From assembly GCF_020745735.1 (NCBI RefSeq), contig NC_083435.1, forward strand, positions 35,198,121 through 35,262,120: 64,000 nucleotides of DNA, written 5' to 3'. Origin of the DNA: Hemiscyllium ocellatum (taxonomy: Eukaryota). Made by a program: the position numbers and the translations under genes. Below are positions 12,823-60,945 of the stretch, piece after piece (the stretch's first letter is position 1; every line of letters starts with the position of its first letter). The notes beneath the pieces are model-generated. The model searched no databases. It was not told the DNA's origin and saw nothing but the letters and a program-made list of their open reading frames with translations.

Positions 12823-13730
12823 CTACCTATTTGCCGCCGTCACAAACTGATTAATTGTATTAGCACAATATTTCATGGCATTCCTCAGCTCCTCCCTGAA
12901 TCTTGCTTGTGTAAGCGCATACATGCAGGTGCTTGTAGAGCAGTTCAGAACCCTAAGCATGCGCGAGGTTTCATTGACAATAGCAAATGGATCATTAAAG
13001 TCCCGGTAAAAGTAAGTGTTCGTGATTCGCGAAAACAGGAAGAGACCAACTGTCGCCATCCAAAGGATGATGAAACTTGCTGAGGCAGCAAAGAGTAACA
13101 TCAGCGCTCTCCTCCGACTTTGCATCTCAGGGTCTCCCGCTTCTCCTCCACTTCCCCGAAATCCCCGCCGGATCTGACTAGCCACAAGTACATGCCTAAT
13201 AGTCAGGAGGTTGAGCAGAACCACGCACACGTAGGGGACCAAGGGAGTTAAAATAGTGTGGAGCCAATAGAAAGCTCGCCACGCGGGAGATGTGTCAATG
13301 TTGGGATTTGTCTTACAGCCAAACTCTCTGTTATTCTGCACATGGATGGGTAGAATTGCAAAGTAATAGGGAAGGTTCCTGGAGTAGGTCAGGAGGTAAA
13401 CAAGTGTAACTACCAAAACCGCGCACTTCGGGGAGCAGTATATTCTTCTGACTCGCTGGAAGCAGATGATGACGAATCGATCGAAGGTGAAGGACACTGT
13501 TATCCAGACCGAGCAGTCAATCACGGCTGCGATCATGATCGAGATCAGACGACAACCGAAGGTATAGAGATAAAAGACATGCTGGAAACGCGGGAGAAGG
13601 ATGCGGTAGAGCAGAACATAGAAGATTAGGACCAGCAGATCGGCCGTGGACATGGACATGAGGTAAATTCGAGTGCTCCGGGACAGACCGCAGTCTCTCA
13701 GTTGCAGAGTCAGAAATATGACCGCATTTG
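12823..13730 (-). CDS. GPCR-A exon 2: GPR139/GPR142-like class A GPCR (rest of TM1 through the stop)
   Basis: Acceptor cttctcttccctctag|CA AAT GCG (phase 1) gives ANAVIFLTLQLRDCGLSRSTRIYLMSMSTADLLV...SFTFDRFVIIC...LWMAT...NCSTSTCMY. 908 nt, open to the stop. Confidence 0.93.
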
Positions 13731-19008: not shown

Positions 19009-19309
19009 TCTGGAGCCTCCTGCGAAGCGCTTCTTTGATGTTTCTTCCGGCATTTATAGTGGTCTGTCCTTGCCGCTTCCGGGTGTCAGTTTCAGCTGTC
19101 CGCTGTAGTGATTGGTATATTGGGTCTAGGTCGATGTGTCTGTTGATGGAGTTTGTGGATGAATGCCATGCCTTTAGGAATTCCCTGGCTGTTCTCTGTC
19201 TGGCTTGCCCTATGATAGTAGTGTTTTCCCAGTCGAATCCATGTTGCTTGTTGTCTGAGTGTGTGGCTACTAGGGATAGCTGGTCGTGTCGTTTCGTGGC
19301 TAGTTGGTG

Positions 19310-20710
19310 GCCAAAGAACTACAACAGAAACTGAAACACCTGGTCAGCGGATCCAAACACTCCATACAATCAACACAGGAATTCTTGGACGCCATCAGGA
19401 ATACACACATAGACAAAGAAGAAACCATGATCTCATTCGACGTAACGGCACTGTTCACTTCGATTGACAAAACCCTAGCCAGAGAAACAATAGCCAACCT
19501 ACTGGACATACATAACAGAAAACAGGAGGCGGAACCTATCAACAAAGACGGCATACTTAAACTACTGGACTTATGCCTCACTACACACTTTACATTCAAC
19601 AATCAGATATACGAACAAATCAACGGAACACCCATGGGATCACCAATCTCGGGACTCATAGCAGAGGCAGTTATGCAAAGGTTAGAACAAACAGCCCTAC
19701 CACAACTTCAACCCAAACTCTGGGTCAGATATGTCGATGACATTTTCGTATTCATCAAAAGCACGGAAATAGAAAAAACACACCGGATCATCAACGCCAC
19801 ACTCACAGGCATCCGATTCACGAGAGAAGTAGAAAAGGATAGCCAACTCCCATTCCTAGACGTGATAGTACAGAGAACACCGAACGGAGAATTCACCACA
19901 AGGCTCCACAGGAAAACAACACACACAGACCAAGTCCTAAACTATGAAAGTAACCACCCCAACACACACAAACGAAGCTGCATCAGGACACTTGTGAAAA
20001 GAGCTACAACACACTGCAGTGCACCAGAACTGCGAAAAGAGGAAGAGGAACACCTATACAAGGTATTCGCCAAAAACGGATACCCGCGCAACTTTATCAC
20101 CAGATGCCTAAGAGATAGACCACGGAACGAGGACATGCCACAACCAAAAGGACTAGCCACACTACCATACATCAGGAGCGTTTCAGAACTGACAGCCAGA
20201 CTACTGCGACCCCTAGGACTCATAACGGCACACAAACCAACAGCCACGCACAGACAACAACTTACTAGAACAAAGGAGTCAATATCCAACATGAGCAAAA
20301 CTAATGTAGTTTATAAAATACCATGCAAGGACTGCACAAAACACTATATAGGACAAACAGGAAGACAGCTAACAATCCGCATACATGAACACCAACTAGC
20401 CACGAAACGACACGACCAGCTATCCCTAGTAGCCACACACTCAGACAACAAGCAACATGAATTCGACTGGGAAAACACTACTACCATAGGGCAAGCCAGA
20501 CAGAGAACAGCCAGGGAATTCCTAAAGGCATGGCATTCATCCACAAACTCCATCAACAGACACATCGACCTACACCCAATATACCAATCACTACAGCGGA
20601 CAGCTGAAACTGACACCCGGAAGCGGCAAGGACAGACCACTATAAATGCCGGAAGAAACATCAAAGAAGCGCTTCGCAGGAGGCTCCAGAGCACTGATGA
20701 TGTCTCCTAG
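19310..20710 (+). CDS. 5'-truncated but uninterrupted Penelope RT + GIY-YIG endonuclease ORF
   Basis: RT motifs SFDVTALFTSI, QINGTPMGSPISG and YVDDIF, then GIY-YIG VVYKIPCKDCTKHYIGQTGR. No internal stop over ~466 codons. The N-terminus is lost at the inversion junction. Confidence 0.9.
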   Translation, partial: AKELQQKLKHLVSGSKHSIQSTQEFLDAIRNTHIDKEETMISFDVTALFTSIDKTLARETIANLLDIHNRKQEAEPINKDGILKLLDLCLTTHFTFNNQIYEQINGTPMGSPISGLIAEAVMQRLEQTALPQLQPKLWVRYVDDIFVFIKSTEIEKTHRIINATLTGIRFTREVEKDSQLPFLDVIVQRTPNGEFTTRLHRKTTHTDQVLNYESNHPNTHKRSCIRTLVKRATTHCSAPELRKEEEEHLYKVFAKNGYPRNFITRCLRDRPRNEDMPQPKGLATLPYIRSVSELTARLLRPLGLITAHKPTATHRQQLTRTKESISNMSKTNVVYKIPCKDCTKHYIGQTGRQLTIRIHEHQLATKRHDQLSLVATHSDNKQHEFDWENTTTIGQARQRTAREFLKAWHSSTNSINRHIDLHPIYQSLQRTAETDTRKRQGQTTINAGRNIKEALRRRLQSTDDVS

Positions 20711-37000: not shown

Positions 37001-38510
37001 TGAGAATTTGCTGCTTACCTTTTCAATTTGCCATCATACTTCCCGTTGTTTTCCCTTCCCCTTCCACCAACTCACAAGTTTAAACTCCGAGTGACCATCC
37101 TATTTATCCTTTTCGATAGAACATAGATTCTCTGTCGGTTCAGGTGGAGACCGCCACCATCAGTACAGATCCACCAGTTCCAAAACTGATGCCAATGTCC
37201 CATGAAATGGAACACCTCTGACACACATCACTCTGTTAGCCACATGTTTACTTCCCTAATTTTATTATCACTAAGCCAATTTGCACATGGATCGGGGAGC
37301 AATCTGGAGATTACGACCCTCGAGGACTCGCTCCTTAATTTTCTTCCTCATGCAAGGTAATCCACAAACATGCCATCCTTCCTACCCTTGCCTATGCTGT
37401 TTGTCCCAAAGTGAATCACAACAACTGGATCCTCCCCCTCCCACTCCAACATTCTTTCAAGCCAGTCAAAAATATCCTGCACCCTGGCACCGAGCAGGCA
37501 ACACACCATGTGGGACTTCCAATCTGACCCCTAATTATAGAATCTCCTATAACTACCACGTGTCATTTTGCTCCCCTCTCTTGAATGGCTTTCTACCCCA
37601 TGTTGCCATGGTCAGTTGGCTCATCCTCCCCACAGCCATTTTCCTATCCACGCTGGGAGCAAGTATTGCCTACCTGTTGGATAAGGTCAAAAGCAGAAGC
37701 TCCTCCTTTCCTGAACTCAGGATCGCTCTACCTGCCTCACTTGCAGTCACACCCTGTTGTCCCATATCACTAACTGAATTTGTTAATCTGCCTCTTGCTG
37801 CTGTCCAAGCATATCAACTCACTCACCTCCTGAAATCACACTTCAACTGCAATGAAGGCCGCTGCTCTCAAGAGGTAAGTTTTTAAATAGAGAACTTCCT
37901 TCCTGACAGCCCCTGATATCCGCTCTTGTCACTCCCACTGCAGCAATGACAGGCGCCATTATTGAGGTCTATACAATCGTGAAGGGCATAGATAAGCCAA
38001 GATCTTTTTATCTCAGGATAGGGGAGTACAAAACTAAACGGCATAGGTTTAAAGTGAAAGGGGAAAGAATTAAAAGGGACCCGAGGAATGGCTCTTGTGC
38101 ATAGAGGGTGGTGCATGTATGGAACAAGCTGCCAGTGCAGGTAGGTTCAATTGCAACATTTAAAAGGACATTTGGACAGGTGCACTATTTAACACGATCA
38201 TAGCCTGATCATCAAAATGACTCTGCACAACATTCCCCACGGTCATCTCACTTCGTTTGCATTGAGTCTTTTTTGATACTTCTTGCTGGGTTTATCGTCC
38301 CTTCTTCACTTGACAATTTATGTTCCTGTTAAAGCATAAAATTTCATTTGAAAATCTACCCTCAAGAAAACTGCAATTCTTATGCAATAGAAACCAAATG
38401 TCAATTGTTACTGCTATAACTGAATGTTACAAACTCAAACATAATCATGGGCGTGTGTGAGAAAATATTGCAAGGTTGTTCTGTGATACATTAAGAAAAA
38501 TTTGCCATAC

Positions 38511-38615
38511 CTCTTCGTCTTCTCCACCATATAAATATGATAACAATGATTGCGAGTGAAACCAGTACAGCCAAGACAATCATCCCCACATTGTTGCTAT
38601 CCTTCACTTTTCCTT
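38511..38615 (-). CDS. MHC class I-like connecting peptide/transmembrane exon
   Basis: ttttcag|AA GGA...AGA G|gtatgg. 105 nt, phase 1-1. EGKVKDSNNVGMIVLAVLVSLAIIVIIFIWWRRRR: hydrophobic span plus basic stop-transfer. Confidence 0.88.
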
Positions 38616-46141: not shown

Positions 46142-47325
46142 TAAAAAGTGAGGTCTGCAGATGCTGGAGATCAGAGCTGAAAATGTGTTGCTGGTTAAAG
46201 CACAGCAGATCAGGCAGCATCCAAGGAACAGGAAATTCGATGTTTCGGGCCAGAGCCCTTCATCAGGAATGAGGAGAGTGTGCCAGGCAGGCTAAGATAA
46301 AAGGTAGGGAGGAGGGACTTGGGGGAGGGGCGATGGAGATGTGATAGGTGGAAGGAGGTCAAGGTGAGGGTGATAGGCTGGAGTGGGGTGGGGGCGGAGA
46401 GGTCAGGAAGAAGATTGCAGGTTAGGAGGGCGGTGCTGAGTTCAAGGGAATCGACTGAGACAAGGTGCGGGGAGGGGAAATGAGGAAACTGGAGAAATCT
46501 GAGTTCATCCCTTGTGGTTGGAGGGTTCCCAGGCGGAAGATGAGGCGCTCTTCCTCCAACCGTCGTGTTGTTATGTTCTGGCGATGGAGGAGTCCAAGGA
46601 CCTGCATGTCCTCGGTGGAGTGGGAGGGAGAGTTAAAGTGTTGAGCCACGGGGTGGTTGGGTTGTTGGTCCGGGCGTCCCAGACGTGTTCCCTGAAGCGT
46701 TCCGCAAGTAGGCGGCCCGTCTCCCCATTATAGGCCACATCAGGTATAGCGGATGCAATAGATGATGTGTGTGGAGGTGCAGGTGAATTTGTGGTGGATA
46801 TGGAAGAATCCCTTGGGGCCTTGGAGAGAAGTAAGGGAGGAGGTGTGGGCGCAAGTTTTCCATTTCCTGCGGTTGCAGGGGAAGGTGCTGGGAGTAGAGG
46901 TTGGGTTGGTGGGGGGTGTGGACCTGACGAGGGAGTCACGAAGGGAGTGGTCTTTGCGGAACGCTGATAGGGAAGGGGAGGGAAATATATCCCTGGTGGT
47001 GGGGTCCGTTTGGAGGTGGCGGAAATGACGGCGGATGATACGCTGTATACGGAGGTTGGTAGGGTGGTAGGTGAGAACCAGTGGGGTTCTGTCTTGGTGG
47101 CGGTTGGAGGGGCGGGGCTCAAGGGCGGAGGAGCGGGAAGTGGAGGAGATGCGGTGGAGGGCATCATCGATCACGTCTGGAGGGAATCTGCGGTCCTTGA
47201 AGAAGGAGGCCATCTGGGCTGTACGGTATTGGAACTGGTCCTCCTGGGAGCAGATGCGGCGGAGACGAAGGAATTGGGAATATGGGATGGCGTGTTTACA
47301 GGGGGCAGGGTGGGAGGAGGTGTAG
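46142..47325 (-). mobile_element. Neptune-type Penelope-like element (family N2), 5'-truncated, nested in an N1 terminal remnant
   Basis: AIPYSQFLRLRRICS thumb, FPCNRRKWKTC linker, and GIY-YIG remnant (GETGRLLAERFREH; LEEERLIFRLGTLQPQGMN). 15-bp TSD TAAAAATCACACAAG at 46127-46141 and 47326-47340. Confidence 0.88.
46235..46270 (-). ncRNA. Hammerhead motif of the N2 PLE (stem III decayed)
   Basis: AUUC-CUGAUGA-A-GGGC(ucug)GCCC-GAA-ACAU-C-GAAU. ACAU is one CpG transition from palindromic ACGU. Confidence 0.55.
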
Positions 47326-47375
47326 TAAAAATCACACAAGACCAGGTTATAGTCCAACAGGTTTAATTGGAAGCA

Positions 47376-47407
47376 CACTAGCTTTCGGAGCGATGCTCCT
47401 TCATCAG
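47376..47407 (-). ncRNA. Hammerhead motif of the N1 PLE remnant
   Basis: CUGAUGA-A-GGAGC(auc)GCUCC-GAA-AGCU-A-GUG with palindromic AGCU. The 5' strand of stem I is lost at the truncation. Confidence 0.5.
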
Positions 47408-47523: not shown

Positions 47524-47790
47524 CCCACAGGACAGTCTTTCCATCCGGGATGCTGCTGTGCTCAATATGACAAGCATATTGGTTGCCATCATACGGGTCA
47601 AATTGGAGGGTTGTCTTCAGTTGGAAAGTCCCATCTTGGTTGGGTAATAACCCAGAAGAGGTCGTCTCATCGGCATGTTTTCCATTCTTCAGCCAGGTCA
47701 CATTGATGGGTTGTGGGTAAAATCCAATCACAACGCAGTGCAGGAACCAGTGATGGCCATCCTTGGCAATAAGTGAGACCTCAGGAGAAA
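47524..47790 (-). CDS. MHC class I-like alpha3 (C1-set Ig) exon
   Basis: gtcatacag|TT TCT...TGG G|gtaagc. 267 nt. LHCVVIGFYPQPINVTW..PNQDGTFQL..YACHIEHSS. Confidence 0.93.
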
Positions 47791-47964: not shown

Positions 47965-48240
47965 TTTTTCTGCTTAAAGAGGCATTTCCAACGAAATAGA
48001 TTGCCTTCCATTGTTCTATACAATCATTTTCCAGCAGATTCTTGAAGTAATGGTTCATCTTTGTTTCCTTATCCCATTTTGTTTTGAATTCCTCTGCAAC
48101 TGGATCATGTACAATCCAGACTAATGCATCTTTGTCAAAACTGAGGATGTATTTGCCATCAAGAGCAAACTTCAAAATCCCTTCATTCGGAGTGGCCTCA
48201 TGTAGTTCACAGCCAAATAGTCCTTGTAGGTAATGGGTTC
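47965..48240 (-). CDS. MHC class I-like alpha2 exon
   Basis: gttttag|GA ACC...AAA A|gtaagt. 276 nt. THYLQGLFGCE..FALDGK..W..KW..LENDCIE with the C101-C164 pair. Confidence 0.93.
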
Positions 48241-49544
48241 CTAAAACATTAATTCAGTGCATGAGTCCTTCAACATTTATTGTCTCTGATCAAATCAAAT
48301 CCGAGAATTTCAGTTTTCCCTTTGTTACTTCACACCCAGTTATTCTCATCATTAGTTAAGAACTGAATAAAGTACATGAAACAAGTGTACAAGCTTTATC
48401 AGGTACAGCAGAACAATTACCTGTTGCCACCAAATGAAGCCAAAGTTATGAAAGAGTGAGAGATGAGGGGAGGATGAGAGGCTGGGGCAGGTGCAATATT
48501 TGGAAGGCAAGTGTAGTTGAAGCCACAACCAGATTACTCATAATCTCATAGGTGGAGGAGTAGGATCAAAGGGTTGAATGGCCTCCTCCCTCTCTTACGT
48601 TCCTATGTGAAATTCAAACCTGCTGCTTCCAGTGTTTTTTCTCTTCAATTATGCATTATGTTCAGTTCTCAGTTATGCTGCAACACCAGTTTCAGTAATC
48701 ATGCCATTGGTACTCGGGGATAGAGGCTGGGAATACAGATTTTCACTGTTACTCTCAAGTGTCTAGGGTGTACTTTGTTAACCATGAGAATGCCCAGTCT
48801 TGAGGAAATTTCTCAAACATCAAGTTAATTTCAAACACCTGAATTCATCTATTTCTGTGAAAATAAATTTGATTTCTCAACTACTGTACAATGGTGGACT
48901 AGAGGAAGAACACCTCATCTTCCATTTTAGGACCCATCAACCACACAGCATCAACACCAACTTCACTAGTTTCCAAATCACCCCACCTCATCCCAGATCC
49001 AACCCTTCAACCTGGCACCGCCAACGTGACCTGTTCATCTTCCTTCCCACCTAGCTGCTCCATCCTCCCATCCCCACCGACCTATCACAATTACCTCCCA
49101 CCTGCATCCAACTCTCACGTTCCCACCTATCTTGACCACCCCACTCCCCCACTTCTCCCTCCATATTCTTGATGAAATGCTTATGCCCGACACGTCGACT
49201 CTCCTACTCCCCAGATGCTGCCTGACCAGCTGTGCTTTTCCAATGCCACACTTTTTAACTGGTATTTTTGGTTACTTTCTCATAGCCACTTGCAGGAATT
49301 TAAAAAAGAAACCTAGGTTTCCTTCAGGCCAGAGACCCATATATCCAATTCAGGTGTAAAGCTGCACTCTGTTGTTCATATTCCCCTGATAGTAACATTA
49401 AAATGTCTTCTGGCAGCTGAGCTCCAATTCTGTGGAGTTGCTAAACGATTGGCCACGAACAATCAGACAGCCAAGCACCCTCTTCAACTACAGAGTCAGT
49501 TACAATTGTGAGGATTAGTAACGACCGTATTGCTAGACTATTAA

Positions 49545-51650
49545 TCCAGAAATGCATTAATGTTCCGAGAATTATTGGCAGATGTTGAAATTTAAGTTCA
49601 ATAAAAATATCATGAAACCCAGTTGATTCTTGAAAAGACCCACCTTGTGGTCCTTCAGAGAAGCAGATAAGATTCCTCATGTGTGAGGAAGGGTCACTCG
49701 ACCTGAAATGTTAACTCTGATTTCTCTCCACAGGTGCCTCCAGACATGCTGAGCTTTGCCAGCAATTGCCTGATTTACAGGTCTTTTGTTTTATTTTTCA
49801 TATAAAATAAGCTATCAACTCCTGATCTGGCCCACATGGGACTCCAGACCCAGAGCAATGTAGTTGGCTCTCAACTGCAATCTGAATGGCCCAGCAAGCC
49901 ATTCAGTTGTAGCCAATCGTTACGAAGGTGGAAGCGGCAGGGTAGATGGTGCTTGACTCCCATTCAATGACGGACCGCATCCTTTTTTTCCATCATTTGT
50001 ATTTTGAATCAAATCCATTTTATCTTCTTTCTGCAGCTGTGGTGGTGGAGAGAGGTTGCAAAAACTAAGACTGAAGCAGACGTGCCGCATAGATGATCCA
50101 CCTTGGCCTCCTCCAGTGGTTCCCTGCGTTACTGTTGCCAATCTTCAGGCAATTTGATTAACTGACATCAAGAAATGATTGGAGACACTCGTTACTACAA
50201 GGTCGATGGCTCATGACAACATCCCGGCAATAATATCACGCATTACCATCCCATCAGTCTCCACTTGATCATGGGTAAAGTGATCAAAAATATCATCATC
50301 ACCAGCATGATCAAGCATCACCTACTCAGTGATGCCCAGTTTGGTTTCCAGCTGGTCCATTCAGCCCCTGATTTCATTACGATTTTGGTGCAAGCATTGA
50401 GTAAAGAGTTGAATTCCAGAGGTGAGGTGGGATTGACTGTTCTTGACATCAAGCACACAACTCATCAAGTGTGAAAGGAAGGACCTCTGGTGAAACTAGA
50501 GTCAACAGGAATCAGGGGAAATGTCCTCACTGGTTGAAATCAGACAAAGTACAAAAAAGATGTTCTTTCTTGAAATCAGAGAATCCTTACAGTTGGAAAC
50601 AGGCCATTTGCTCATCGAGTCCACACCAACTCTCCGAAGAGTTTCCCACCCAGACCACCCCATCCCTGAAACACTGCATATTCCGTGATTAATCCAACTA
50701 ACCTGCACATTCCTGAACACTATAGCCAATTTTGCATGGCAAATCCATCTAACCTCCCTATATGTACTGTGGGAGAAAACCAGAGCACCTAGAGGAAATC
50801 CTTTCAGTCACGGGATGAACGTGCAAACTCCACACAGACAATAGTCTAAGGGTTGAATTGAACCCGGGTTCTTGGTGCTGTAAGGCAGCAATGCTAACCA
50901 CTGAGCGACCACATTGTGCTAACCACTGAACCAACATTCAGCACTATTCACAGTGCCATTCTTGTTGGAGATTAACCATCTCAGCTCCAGGACATCTCTG
51001 CGGGAGTTCCTCAGGGTAGTGATCTTCAGTTGCTTCAATGATCTTCCCTCCAACATAAGGTCAGAAATGGGGATGTTCACTGATGATTGCACAATGTTCC
51101 GCACCATTCATGACTCCTCTGATCCAAAAGCAGACAAGCTAAAATGCAACAAGATCTGAACACTATCCAGGCTTGAGCTGACAAGTGCCAAGTAAAATTT
51201 GTACCACACAAATGTTAGGTAATGACCATCTCCAATAAGAAATAAAATAACCATAATTCCTTGACACTCAATGGTGTCACCAACATTGAATCTCCCATTA
51301 TTAACAATCTGTGGTTATCACTGACTTGAAACTCAATGGATTCACTATGTAAATAAAGTGGCTTCAAAAAACAGGTCAGGGGTGAGGAATACTGCAGAAC
51401 ATAATTCACCTCCTGAGTTGCCAAAGCATGTTCTCATCTAAAATACTGGAGTCAGGAGAGGGAGGCTCACCACTTGCCCGGATGGATGCATCTGCAACAG
51501 CACTCAAGTAGCTTGACATGTCTCAGTACAAAACAGCCCACTTAATGGGCAACACATCCAGAATCATTCGCTCCTTCCACCACTGACATTCAGTCTGCAC
51601 TGCTGCTGTTACCTACAAGATGCACTGTGGAAATTCACCAAAGCTCTTTG
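49545..51650 (+). mobile_element. Fragmented L2/CR1-group LINE (same tRNA-headed family) interrupted by an HE1 SINE (~50576-50915, minus) and a PLE remnant (~49680-49790)
   Basis: LLSDAQFGFQLVHSAPDF..ELNSRGEV and SEMGMFTDDCTMF. The SINE-like head is seen at ~49545-49900. Confidence 0.7.
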
Positions 51651-51793
51651 ATAAAGTGCGGAGTATACATCGGGTTAATGATAGGTGTCTTTTCTACAGG
51701 GTAGGGGATTTCAATCCAAAGGAGAGCATTATTACGGTGAACAGAAAGAGTTTCAAAAAATATATGAGGGGCAATTTCCTTACACAGAGGGTG

Positions 51794-52319
51794 TTTGTAA
51801 GTTCCCTCACTGAGCTGGTAGGTCTGTTCTCAGACATTTCGTCACCATGCTGGGCAACATCATCAGTGGGCCTTCGGTGAGCACTGGTGTTCTGTCCCTC
51901 TTTCTATTTATGTGCTTTCCCCTGTTAAAGGTGGGGGAATATCATTTCTGATTCTTTTTTCTCAGAGGTTGGTAAATGGAGTCCCCATTGATGTGTTTCT
52001 TCATGCAGTTTGAATGCCAGATCTCTAGGAATTCTTGTGCGTGTCTCGGTTTAGCCTGCGCTAGGATGCAAGTGTTGTCCTAGTCGAAGTGCTGGGACCA
52101 TATTTACCTACCTCTGAGAAGAACCGGAAATGATATCAGCCCCTTTAACAGATCAGGAGACATAAACAGAAAATGGGACAGAACACCAGCGCTTCAGCAG
52201 AGGCTCACTGATGACGTTACCTAGCATGGTGACAAAATGTCTGAGAACAAACCTTCCGGCTCAACGAGCAAACTTACAACCTCAACTTCAACCTGAGCTA
52301 TAAATCTTCTCAAAAATCG
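51794..52319. mobile_element. Short Poseidon-type PLE-3 with inverted arms, inserted in a CR1 3' end
   Basis: TSD CACAGAGGGTG at 51783-51793 and 52320-52330. Decayed hammerheads on both arms (ctcactgatgacgttacc..ggtgacaaaatgtctgag). Confidence 0.8.
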
Positions 52320-52888
52320 CACAGAGGGTGGTCCGTGTGCAGTAACTTCCAAAGGAAGTGGTGGAAGTGGGACATAGTTATAATGTTGAAAAGACACTTC
52401 AGTAAGAACATGAAAAGGAAAGATTTGGAAGGATAAGAGCCAGGATTATCAACCGCTTCTATCCAGAAGGACTCCATTTACATCGAATCACCACATCTGC
52501 AAATTCCCCTCCAAGCCGCTCACCATCCTGACTTAGAAATATATCTCTGTTTCTTCACTGTCACCAGTAGTACCCTTTCTAAGGGCTTTTTGCCTCAACC
52601 TCGAACAAATGGACTGCAGCAGTTCAAGAACACAGCTTACCACCACCTTCTTGATGGCAAAAAGGCACAGGCAATAAATGCTGCCCAGCCAGTGATGCAC
52701 ACATGGCAGAAGTAATTTTTTTTTAAAAAAGGGAAAGGTCAAAGAAAATCAAGCTGGATGCAGAAAGGGAAAGGGAAGGAAAGATCAAACAGACAGCAGA
52801 ATAGTTCAACACTCCCGGTGCACACTATAATCTAACATGAATATCATGTCTGAACCTCACTGCAATGACTTTAAATGGATAAACTCAC

Positions 52889-53149
52889 GTGATGTTTGAT
52901 TTTCTTTCTGGAGCCAACCATCAGCCTGTCCCTTGATTAGTCCATGGAACCCAACTACAGTGACAGTGCACTCATCCCAGTAACCCTTGTCGAATGCATC
53001 CACCAACCATTGCTGCCTTGGAATGGTTTTTTTCATATTGCTGTCAAAATAGAATACCTCGCAGTCATCCAAAATTCCCAGGACACTGTACTCCGGTAGG
53101 TCTTTGTCCCCATGATTGAGATTGTACTGATAGAGCAGAGAGTGAGACT
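52889..53149 (-). CDS. MHC class I-like alpha1 exon
   Basis: ctttcttccag|AG TCT...TCA C|gtgagt. 261 nt. ESHSLLYQY..ILDDCEVFYFDS..PRQQW..GYWD..ENQTS. Confidence 0.93.
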
Positions 53150-60123: not shown

Positions 60124-60196
60124 CGGTCAGGGATGGCTGCACACGGAAGACATTCAGGAAAAGTAGCAGCAACACGCCTTGAGGTCCTCCTGTCAT
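60124..60196 (-). CDS. MHC class I-like leader (signal peptide) exon
   Basis: ATG at 60196, MTGGPQGVLLLLFLNVFRVQPSLT, then G|gtgagt. 73 nt, phase 1, joins alpha1 as E-S-H-S. Confidence 0.85.
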
Positions 60197-60302
60197 TTTT
60201 CACAAAAACTTCCTACCTGCTGCTGGTGAACACAAATGAGGAGGGGTGAGGATAAGAAGAAAATATGAGCTGAGTTTTACACACACCTATCAAGCACAAC
60301 TT

Positions 60303-60307
60303 CCAAT
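60303..60307 (-). promoter_or_regulatory. Possible inverted CCAAT (Y-box-like) element ~110 nt upstream of the class I ATG
   Basis: ATTGG on the coding strand, with GGAAGT ETS-like words nearby. Short motifs of uncertain significance. Confidence 0.3.
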
Positions 60308-60315
60308 TGCAATAA

Positions 60316-60945
60316 AGGGGGGAGGAGGAGAGAGGAAATGGGGATGGAGAGACTAGAGGGGAGGGGACAGTAGAGGGGCGATGGTGGCAGTAGAGGGTAA
60401 GTGGGGGAGTAGAAGGGAAGGAGGAAAGTAGAGAAGTGAGGGGCGCGAGGGGATAGTAGAGGGTGTTAGAGTAGAGCGGAGGTTAGAAGAAAGAGTAGAG
60501 GGGAAAGTAGAGTAGAGAGGTGAGGTTAGAGAAGAGGGGAAGAGGATGTATTGGGGGAAAGAAGGAGGGTGTGAAGAGGGCAGGGACATGGAGAGTGAGT
60601 AGAGGGGAGGGACTAGAGTCAGGGAGAGGGGAAGGGGACAGTGAAGGGCAGACGGTGGGGTGGTCCGAGAGGGTGAAGGAGGTGTGAAGGGAGGGAGGGG
60701 TAGAGGGAAGGGGGGTAAGGGCCGAGAGTATGGCTGTAGAGAGTTGAGGGGAGGGAGGTTGGAGAGGTTGGGTGATTTGGGAGGGGAGGGGAGCGCGTAG
60801 GGGTGGAGGGGAGGCAAAATGAGAAGATGGCTGCGGGGAGGAGAAGCAGGGACAGATGGGGTGGGGAGGAGAGGTGGGAGGGTGATGGAGAGTGAGTTGG
60901 GAGAGGGGGGGAGAGGGTAGAGGGTGGAAGAGAGGAGAGGTCTAT
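60316..60945. repeat. Polypurine/polypyrimidine low-complexity tract
   Basis: Plus strand is almost entirely G/A, with many GGG runs. Confidence 0.9.

Follow-up and report, generated by a model that had tools for sequence, protein, structure and literature searches.

A nonclassical MHC class I gene of the epaulette shark is the ortholog of UGA, with lipid or lipid-like ligands most likely

We analyzed a window of 64,000 nucleotides (64 kb) from the genome of the epaulette shark, Hemiscyllium ocellatum (RefSeq assembly GCF_020745735.1, contig NC_083435.1, forward-strand positions 35,198,121 to 35,262,120), whose internal positions are used throughout. It holds a single class I gene of the major histocompatibility complex (MHC), located on the minus strand from 60196 to 35710 and composed of six exons separated by introns that are all GT-AG (Table 1). 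Exon borders were determined by three-frame translation and by tblastn with ortholog proteins. The spliced six-exon product is identical over all 332 aa to RefSeq XP_060706367.1 from the same species, where it is named "class I histocompatibility antigen, F10 alpha chain-like"; the gene is already present in RefSeq, under a generic name. A preliminary description of this locus had covered 47965-53149, a range made up of the exons for alpha1 and alpha2 and of the 4.6 kb intron that separates these two; the other four exons lie outside it. No second class I gene was found in the 64 kb window by tblastn with each domain. The gene is the epaulette-shark ortholog of UGA, a non-classical class I lineage that occurs in both sharks and rays and is probably present in few copies, and its ligands are most likely lipid or lipid-like, a reading to which we assign a probability of about 0.8.

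The protein belongs to the MHC class I superfamily, scoring 79.7 bits against PF00129 (MHC_I; cut-off 28.3) and 64 bits against PF07654 (C1-set; cut-off 21), and its gene follows the class I exon plan, with each domain on its own exon, GT-AG splice sites and phase-1 introns. The cysteines of both disulfides are found, at mature positions C98-C161 and C198-C253 (equivalent to HLA C101-C164 and C203-C259), together with the NQT sequon at position 86 and two further sequons. The preliminary description had reported the N86 NQT site, Q96, both disulfides and open exons; all of these are confirmed, and the splice sites are canonical.

Table 1. Exons of the UGA gene in the epaulette shark window.
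Feature	Position	Strand	Evidence
Exon 1: start codon and signal peptide, 24 codons + 1 base, donor gtgagt	60124..60196	-	tblastn of Chiloscyllium ortholog; exact translation to XP_060706367.1
Exon 2: alpha1, phase 1 at both ends; Y7, Y59, N86 NQT sequon	52889..53149	-	Pfam MHC_I; 9CH4 alpha1 match 4.7e-44
Exon 3: alpha2; C101/C164, F143, K146, W147, L159, Q167, I171	47965..48240	-	Pfam MHC_I 3e-13; 9CH4 match 1.7e-44
Exon 4: alpha3 immunoglobulin C1-set, beta2-microglobulin-binding type	47524..47790	-	Pfam C1-set 1.2e-18; 9CH4 match 1.7e-49
Exon 5: connecting peptide, transmembrane helix, RRRR stop-transfer	38511..38615	-	100% tblastn match to end of Chiloscyllium isoform X2
Exon 6, 17 bases: cytoplasmic tail D-YSVV, then stop; Y-x-x-hydrophobic motif	35710..35726	-	Exact match to XP_060706367.1; motif kept across orthologs

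Chain A of PDB entry 9CH4, released 2026-03-18 under the title "Crystal structure of shark nonclassical MHC CLASS I, UGA", headed the PDB sequence matches of all three domains, with E-values of 1e-44 to 1e-49, and those of the full protein (2.3e-149); other solved class I chains showed 30-36% identity. An AlphaFold2 model based on a 78-sequence alignment (predicted local distance difference test, pLDDT, 92.7) replaced a first model based on 17 sequences, which had a pLDDT of 62.9 and fell below 50 in alpha1. When the final model was used for structure searches with Foldseek and VIA-align, 9CH4 again came first (77% identity, template modeling (TM) score 0.90, Z 30.7).

Full-length orthologs were gathered by a HMMER search and then a word-indexed search, giving family members from Chiloscyllium, Stegostoma, Rhincodon, Cetorhinus, Scyliorhinus, Mustelus, Pristiophorus, Heterodontus and Heptranchias as well as five rays and skates. 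A maximum-likelihood tree joins 21 shark and ray sequences in one clade with a support of 99 in the Shimodaira-Hasegawa-like approximate likelihood ratio test (SH-aLRT), and the inner branching is as in the species tree, with subclades of Orectolobiformes, of Carcharhiniformes plus Lamniformes, and of batoids. The epaulette protein groups with two Chiloscyllium species (95% identity) and then with Rhincodon and Stegostoma (79%). Outside the UGA clade, a little-skate protein (P0050) branches as its sister and a pair of Callorhinchus sequences comes next, and the classical UAA of Triakis falls elsewhere. A lineage phylogeny had been proposed in the preliminary description; the tree places the protein in the shark and ray clade and separates it from classical UAA. 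The nesting of 9CH4 itself in this clade was judged from bit scores. The whale-shark (Rhincodon) member scores 590 bits against 9CH4, more than the 500 bits of the epaulette protein, and the crystallized UGA therefore nests in the clade beside the orectolobiform sequences. What lies at this locus is not a new kind of molecule: it is the species ortholog in a lineage that already has a name and a crystal structure.

Two extra cysteines are encoded in the alpha1 exon (52889-53149, minus strand), at mature positions 30 and 61. C30, on a floor strand, is nearly invariant within the UGA family, and C61, on the helix at HLA position 63, occurs in 8 of the 21 orthologs, crystallized UGA included.

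We numbered the residues of the groove as in HLA-A2, anchoring the numbering on S2-H3-S4, Y59-W60, N86, C101, D119-G120, W133, W147 and C164, and compared them in the 78-sequence alignment, which includes the classical shark UAA of Triakis. Y7, Y59, K146 and W147 are retained; position 84 is K, 123 is I, 143 is F, 159 is L, 167 is Q and 171 is I. Both sets of residues had been given in the preliminary description, and both the landmarks and the alignment bear them out. A W and a Y occur one residue further on (HLA 168 and 172), so that the calls at 167 and 171 need an ungapped alignment after C164, which is supported because the spacing from C164 to G175 equals that of HLA-A2. In the same alignment, Triakis UAA keeps Y7, Y59, R84, T143, K146, W147, Y159, W167 and Y171. 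The epaulette protein has lost five of these nine anchors, having K84, F143, L159, Q167 and I171, and does not carry the anchor set of a classical MHC-Ia molecule. This loss extends to the whole family, as L159 is found in all 21 orthologs and neither T143 nor W167 in any of them, and position 123 is A, I or V across the UGA family. Y7, Y59, K146 and W147 are kept in 19-21 of the 21. The earlier view of the gene as a functional-looking nonclassical class I of the beta2-microglobulin type is thus supported by the intact gene, the C1-set alpha3, the tree position away from UAA and the five lost anchors.

The groove had also been described as largely apolar, on the basis of V67, F70, L73, I74, W81, G97, F99, L114, F116, F143, L159 and I171. 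Every one of these residues is right; by count, the groove is only moderately hydrophobic, with 61% hydrophobic and 10% charged residues over 41 positions, and the same positions in Triakis UAA are 44% hydrophobic and 17% charged. A set of bulky apolar groove residues is conserved in the family, comprising F70, I/L73, I74, W81, G97, F99, L114, L/F116, M152, Y155 and F156. Among the 21 orthologs, entropy is 0.92 bits in the groove and 0.91 bits in the rest of alpha1-alpha2. Judged from these sequences, the groove is no more variable than the remainder of the two domains, the reverse of what a classical locus shows, and such conservation would fit a single ligand class kept since the shark-ray split.

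The cytoplasmic tail reads RRRR-D-YSVV-stop and thus places a Y-x-x-hydrophobic motif in a short tail, as in CD1. The tails of CD1b, CD1c and CD1d carry a Y-x-x-hydrophobic motif that mediates adaptor protein (AP)-dependent endosomal recycling. We found Y-x-x-[V/I] after the basic anchor in 13 of 16 species of the family, and the motif was absent from Triakis UAA and from the sister-lineage sequence, one of each being compared. By analogy with CD1, the conserved motif suggests that UGA samples endosomal lipids.

Other ends of the protein were considered as well. Read-through of the exon 5 donor after RRRR (38491-38511, minus strand) gives G-MANFS-stop, which is the end of Chiloscyllium isoform X2; the product would lack the Y-x-x-hydrophobic motif and may be a tail-less, non-recycling isoform. 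The alternative tail exon of Chiloscyllium punctatum isoform X1 was rejected for the epaulette shark, as its counterpart at 36319-36402 (minus strand) has an in-frame stop and a frameshift here. An SVYSEL sequence resembling an immunoreceptor tyrosine-based inhibitory motif (ITIM) belongs to another reading frame of this same stretch and was not counted as part of the protein.

Verissimo et al. (2023) described a new class Ib lineage of elasmobranchs, UFA, with a binding region "very similar to CD1", mapping to a class Ib cluster with UDA and UEA (PMC10751288). In a 2025 review, both UFA and UGA are called CD1-like on the basis of a personal communication, according to which the crystal structure and mass-spectrometry data point to bound lipids like the ones that human CD1d binds (PMC12562908). 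A primary paper on 9CH4 or UGA was not found in the literature searched, where only this review and the 2023 Molecular Biology and Evolution paper turned up. The idea of CD1-like lipid binding put forward in the preliminary description matches the review's account of UFA and UGA (PMC12562908) and is not new.

Epaulette UGA is a heavy chain of the type I membrane class whose fold is that of an ordinary class I molecule, with an alpha3 of the beta2-microglobulin type. The Tyr, Thr and Trp residues that clamp the peptide termini have been lost at 84, 123, 143, 159 and 167, and in Hemiscylliidae also at 171, and these positions, together with much of the groove lining, are now mostly aliphatic or aromatic, K84 and Q167 being exceptions. 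In our proposal, the most likely ligands would be lipids or lipid-like molecules and not ordinary peptides. The Y-x-x-hydrophobic tail may direct endosomal cycling as in CD1b, CD1c and CD1d, after which the ligands would be displayed to lymphocytes. Lipid binding, endosomal trafficking and T-cell recognition are what we infer for epaulette UGA, and gene structure, orthology to the crystallized UGA, anchor loss and the conservation of groove and tail motif are what the sequences show.

Several observations weigh against this proposal. The groove is on average 0.55 hydrophobic in the UGA family and 0.51 in other class I representatives; we dropped the hydrophobic fraction as a discriminator, as it splits the epaulette protein from UAA (0.61 vs 0.44) but hardly the UGA family from other class I. 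Overall, sequence and backbone resemble CD1 less than they resemble classical class I and MR1, and the claim that UGA binds lipids rests on the review's personal communication and a PDB title. Finally, the retained Y7, Y59, K146 and W147 would also suit a ligand with a peptide-like end. Their conservation, in 19-21 of 21 orthologs, speaks for the alternative that UGA presents lipopeptides or N-acylated amino acids in the manner of chicken YF1*7.1 or macaque Mamu-B*098, with Y7/Y59 or K146/W147 holding a short polar head and the acyl chain lying in the hydrophobic groove. The VIA-align matches that follow 9CH4 are indeed YF1*7.1 with N-palmitoyl or N-myristoyl glycine (Z 28.1 and 28.0), but YF1 and the peptide-binding BF2 differ by 0.2 Z, a ranking that does not discriminate, and the lipids described in the review are of the CD1d type (PMC12562908). 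We consider this alternative improbable. A peptide-presenting class Ib molecule that holds hydrophobic peptides in a non-canonical way would be in keeping with the class I fold, the beta2-microglobulin-type alpha3, the partial A- and F-pocket residues and an overall sequence closest to classical and MR1 chains; the family-wide loss of R/Y84, T143, Y159, W167 and Y/F123, all kept in classical UAA, and the conservation of the groove across the shark-ray split make it very unlikely. We give hardly any credence to a class I-like receptor or carrier without antigen presentation (as ZAG, HFE, FcRn or EPCR, possibly with a structural lipid), which draws on ZAG being among the alpha2 matches and on one of the Callorhinchus outgroup pair, next after the skate sister, being named "zinc-alpha-2-glycoprotein-like", as the name was merely assigned by automatic annotation, the protein combines a membrane-spanning anchor with a sorting motif and keeps the pattern of an open groove, and UGA is described as CD1-like (PMC12562908).

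Within the 21 orthologs, Q167 and I171 are confined to the three sequences from Hemiscylliidae; most orthologs and the crystal sequence have L167 and Y171, and V67 is found in the epaulette shark where others have E or Q. As a tentative and rather doubtful extension, Hemiscylliid sharks would have remodeled one end of the UGA groove (L167 to Q and Y171 to I, and here E/Q67 to V), which may shift the ligand repertoire, and the Y-x-x-hydrophobic tail, found from sharks to rays, would mean that a lipid-presentation route sampling endosomes was present in the elasmobranch ancestor. Should trafficking not be covered by the unpublished work on UGA, the tail motif would offer a direct and simple test of it.

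The window also contains two intronless open reading frames (ORFs) for rhodopsin-type G-protein-coupled receptors (GPCRs; Pfam 7tm_1), at 33436-34413 on the plus strand and 12823-13659 on the minus strand, which share 40% identity and whose nearest solved relative, a distant one, is GPR139 (6.7e-11). The first of them ends 1.3 kb from the stop codon of the UGA gene, in convergent orientation, and shows 59% identity to the GPCR half of a chimeric little-skate model (P0165) in which UGA alpha1-alpha2 is fused to a GPCR. The adjacency of UGA and this GPCR thus seems to be conserved between shark and skate. Directly upstream of the start codon and 5' region of the UGA gene is a pyrimidine-rich repeat stretch with CTC and CCC runs (60300-60500, minus strand). 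Long ORFs that overlap one another and match nothing in Pfam occur at 46571-47378 (minus strand), inside the 8.9 kb intron between the alpha3 and transmembrane exons, and a reverse-transcriptase ORF (Pfam RVT_1, 3.8e-10) lies downstream of the UGA gene at 19304-20710 (plus strand). The intronic and RVT_1 ORFs are probably what is left of retroelements, to which the introns would owe their length.

UGA and UFA together provide evidence for CD1-style lipid presentation that is perhaps as old as jawed vertebrates. To this the locus adds a clean and complete UGA gene model, down to the tail exon of 17 bases, for a shark well suited to laboratory work. It also shows across the family where the groove is invariant and where its residues change, and it supplies a conserved, putative sorting motif open to testing. 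The details that are new here are the conserved C-terminal Y-x-x-hydrophobic motif, the groove conservation, the Hemiscylliidae-specific Q167 and I171, and the GPCR adjacency in a skate.

When compared with known systems, the protein is among other things similar to MR1, which was one of the best non-shark alpha2 matches (1.2e-12) and has the same W147-C164 spacing. In MR1, Lys43 is a groove-floor residue that forms a Schiff base with the ligand. At the position that we take to correspond to this lysine, the epaulette protein and the family consensus have Thr, and MR1-like chemistry was rejected for this reason. Classical UAA (Triakis scyllium; nurse shark, PDB 6LUP) has the fold, exon plan, disulfides and N86 glycan in common with epaulette UGA at 33-35% identity, but it keeps all nine anchors, five of which are missing here, and it belongs to another clade. 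The likeness to CD1 consists of the lost peptide anchors, the hydrophobic groove lining, the short Y-x-x-hydrophobic tail and a heavy chain of the beta2-microglobulin type. It does not extend to sequence membership, as the protein scores 19.7 bits against Pfam MHC_I_3 (PF16497), with a cut-off of 35, and 79.7 against MHC_I; CD1 was absent from the PDB sequence matches of alpha1 and alpha2, appearing through alpha3 only, and from the top 50 structural matches of the model. Published accounts report UFA as linked within the same class Ib cluster and as having a CD1-like binding region (PMC10751288, PMC12562908), a likeness that comes from the published description; UFA is a distinct lineage. The crystallized UGA of 9CH4 comes from another species and differs in having L, Y, L and E where the epaulette protein has Q167, I171, W168 and V67, and the tail was not part of the crystal construct; over alpha1-alpha3 the two are 77% identical, with F143, K146, W147, L159, G97, F99 and the NQT at 86 in common.

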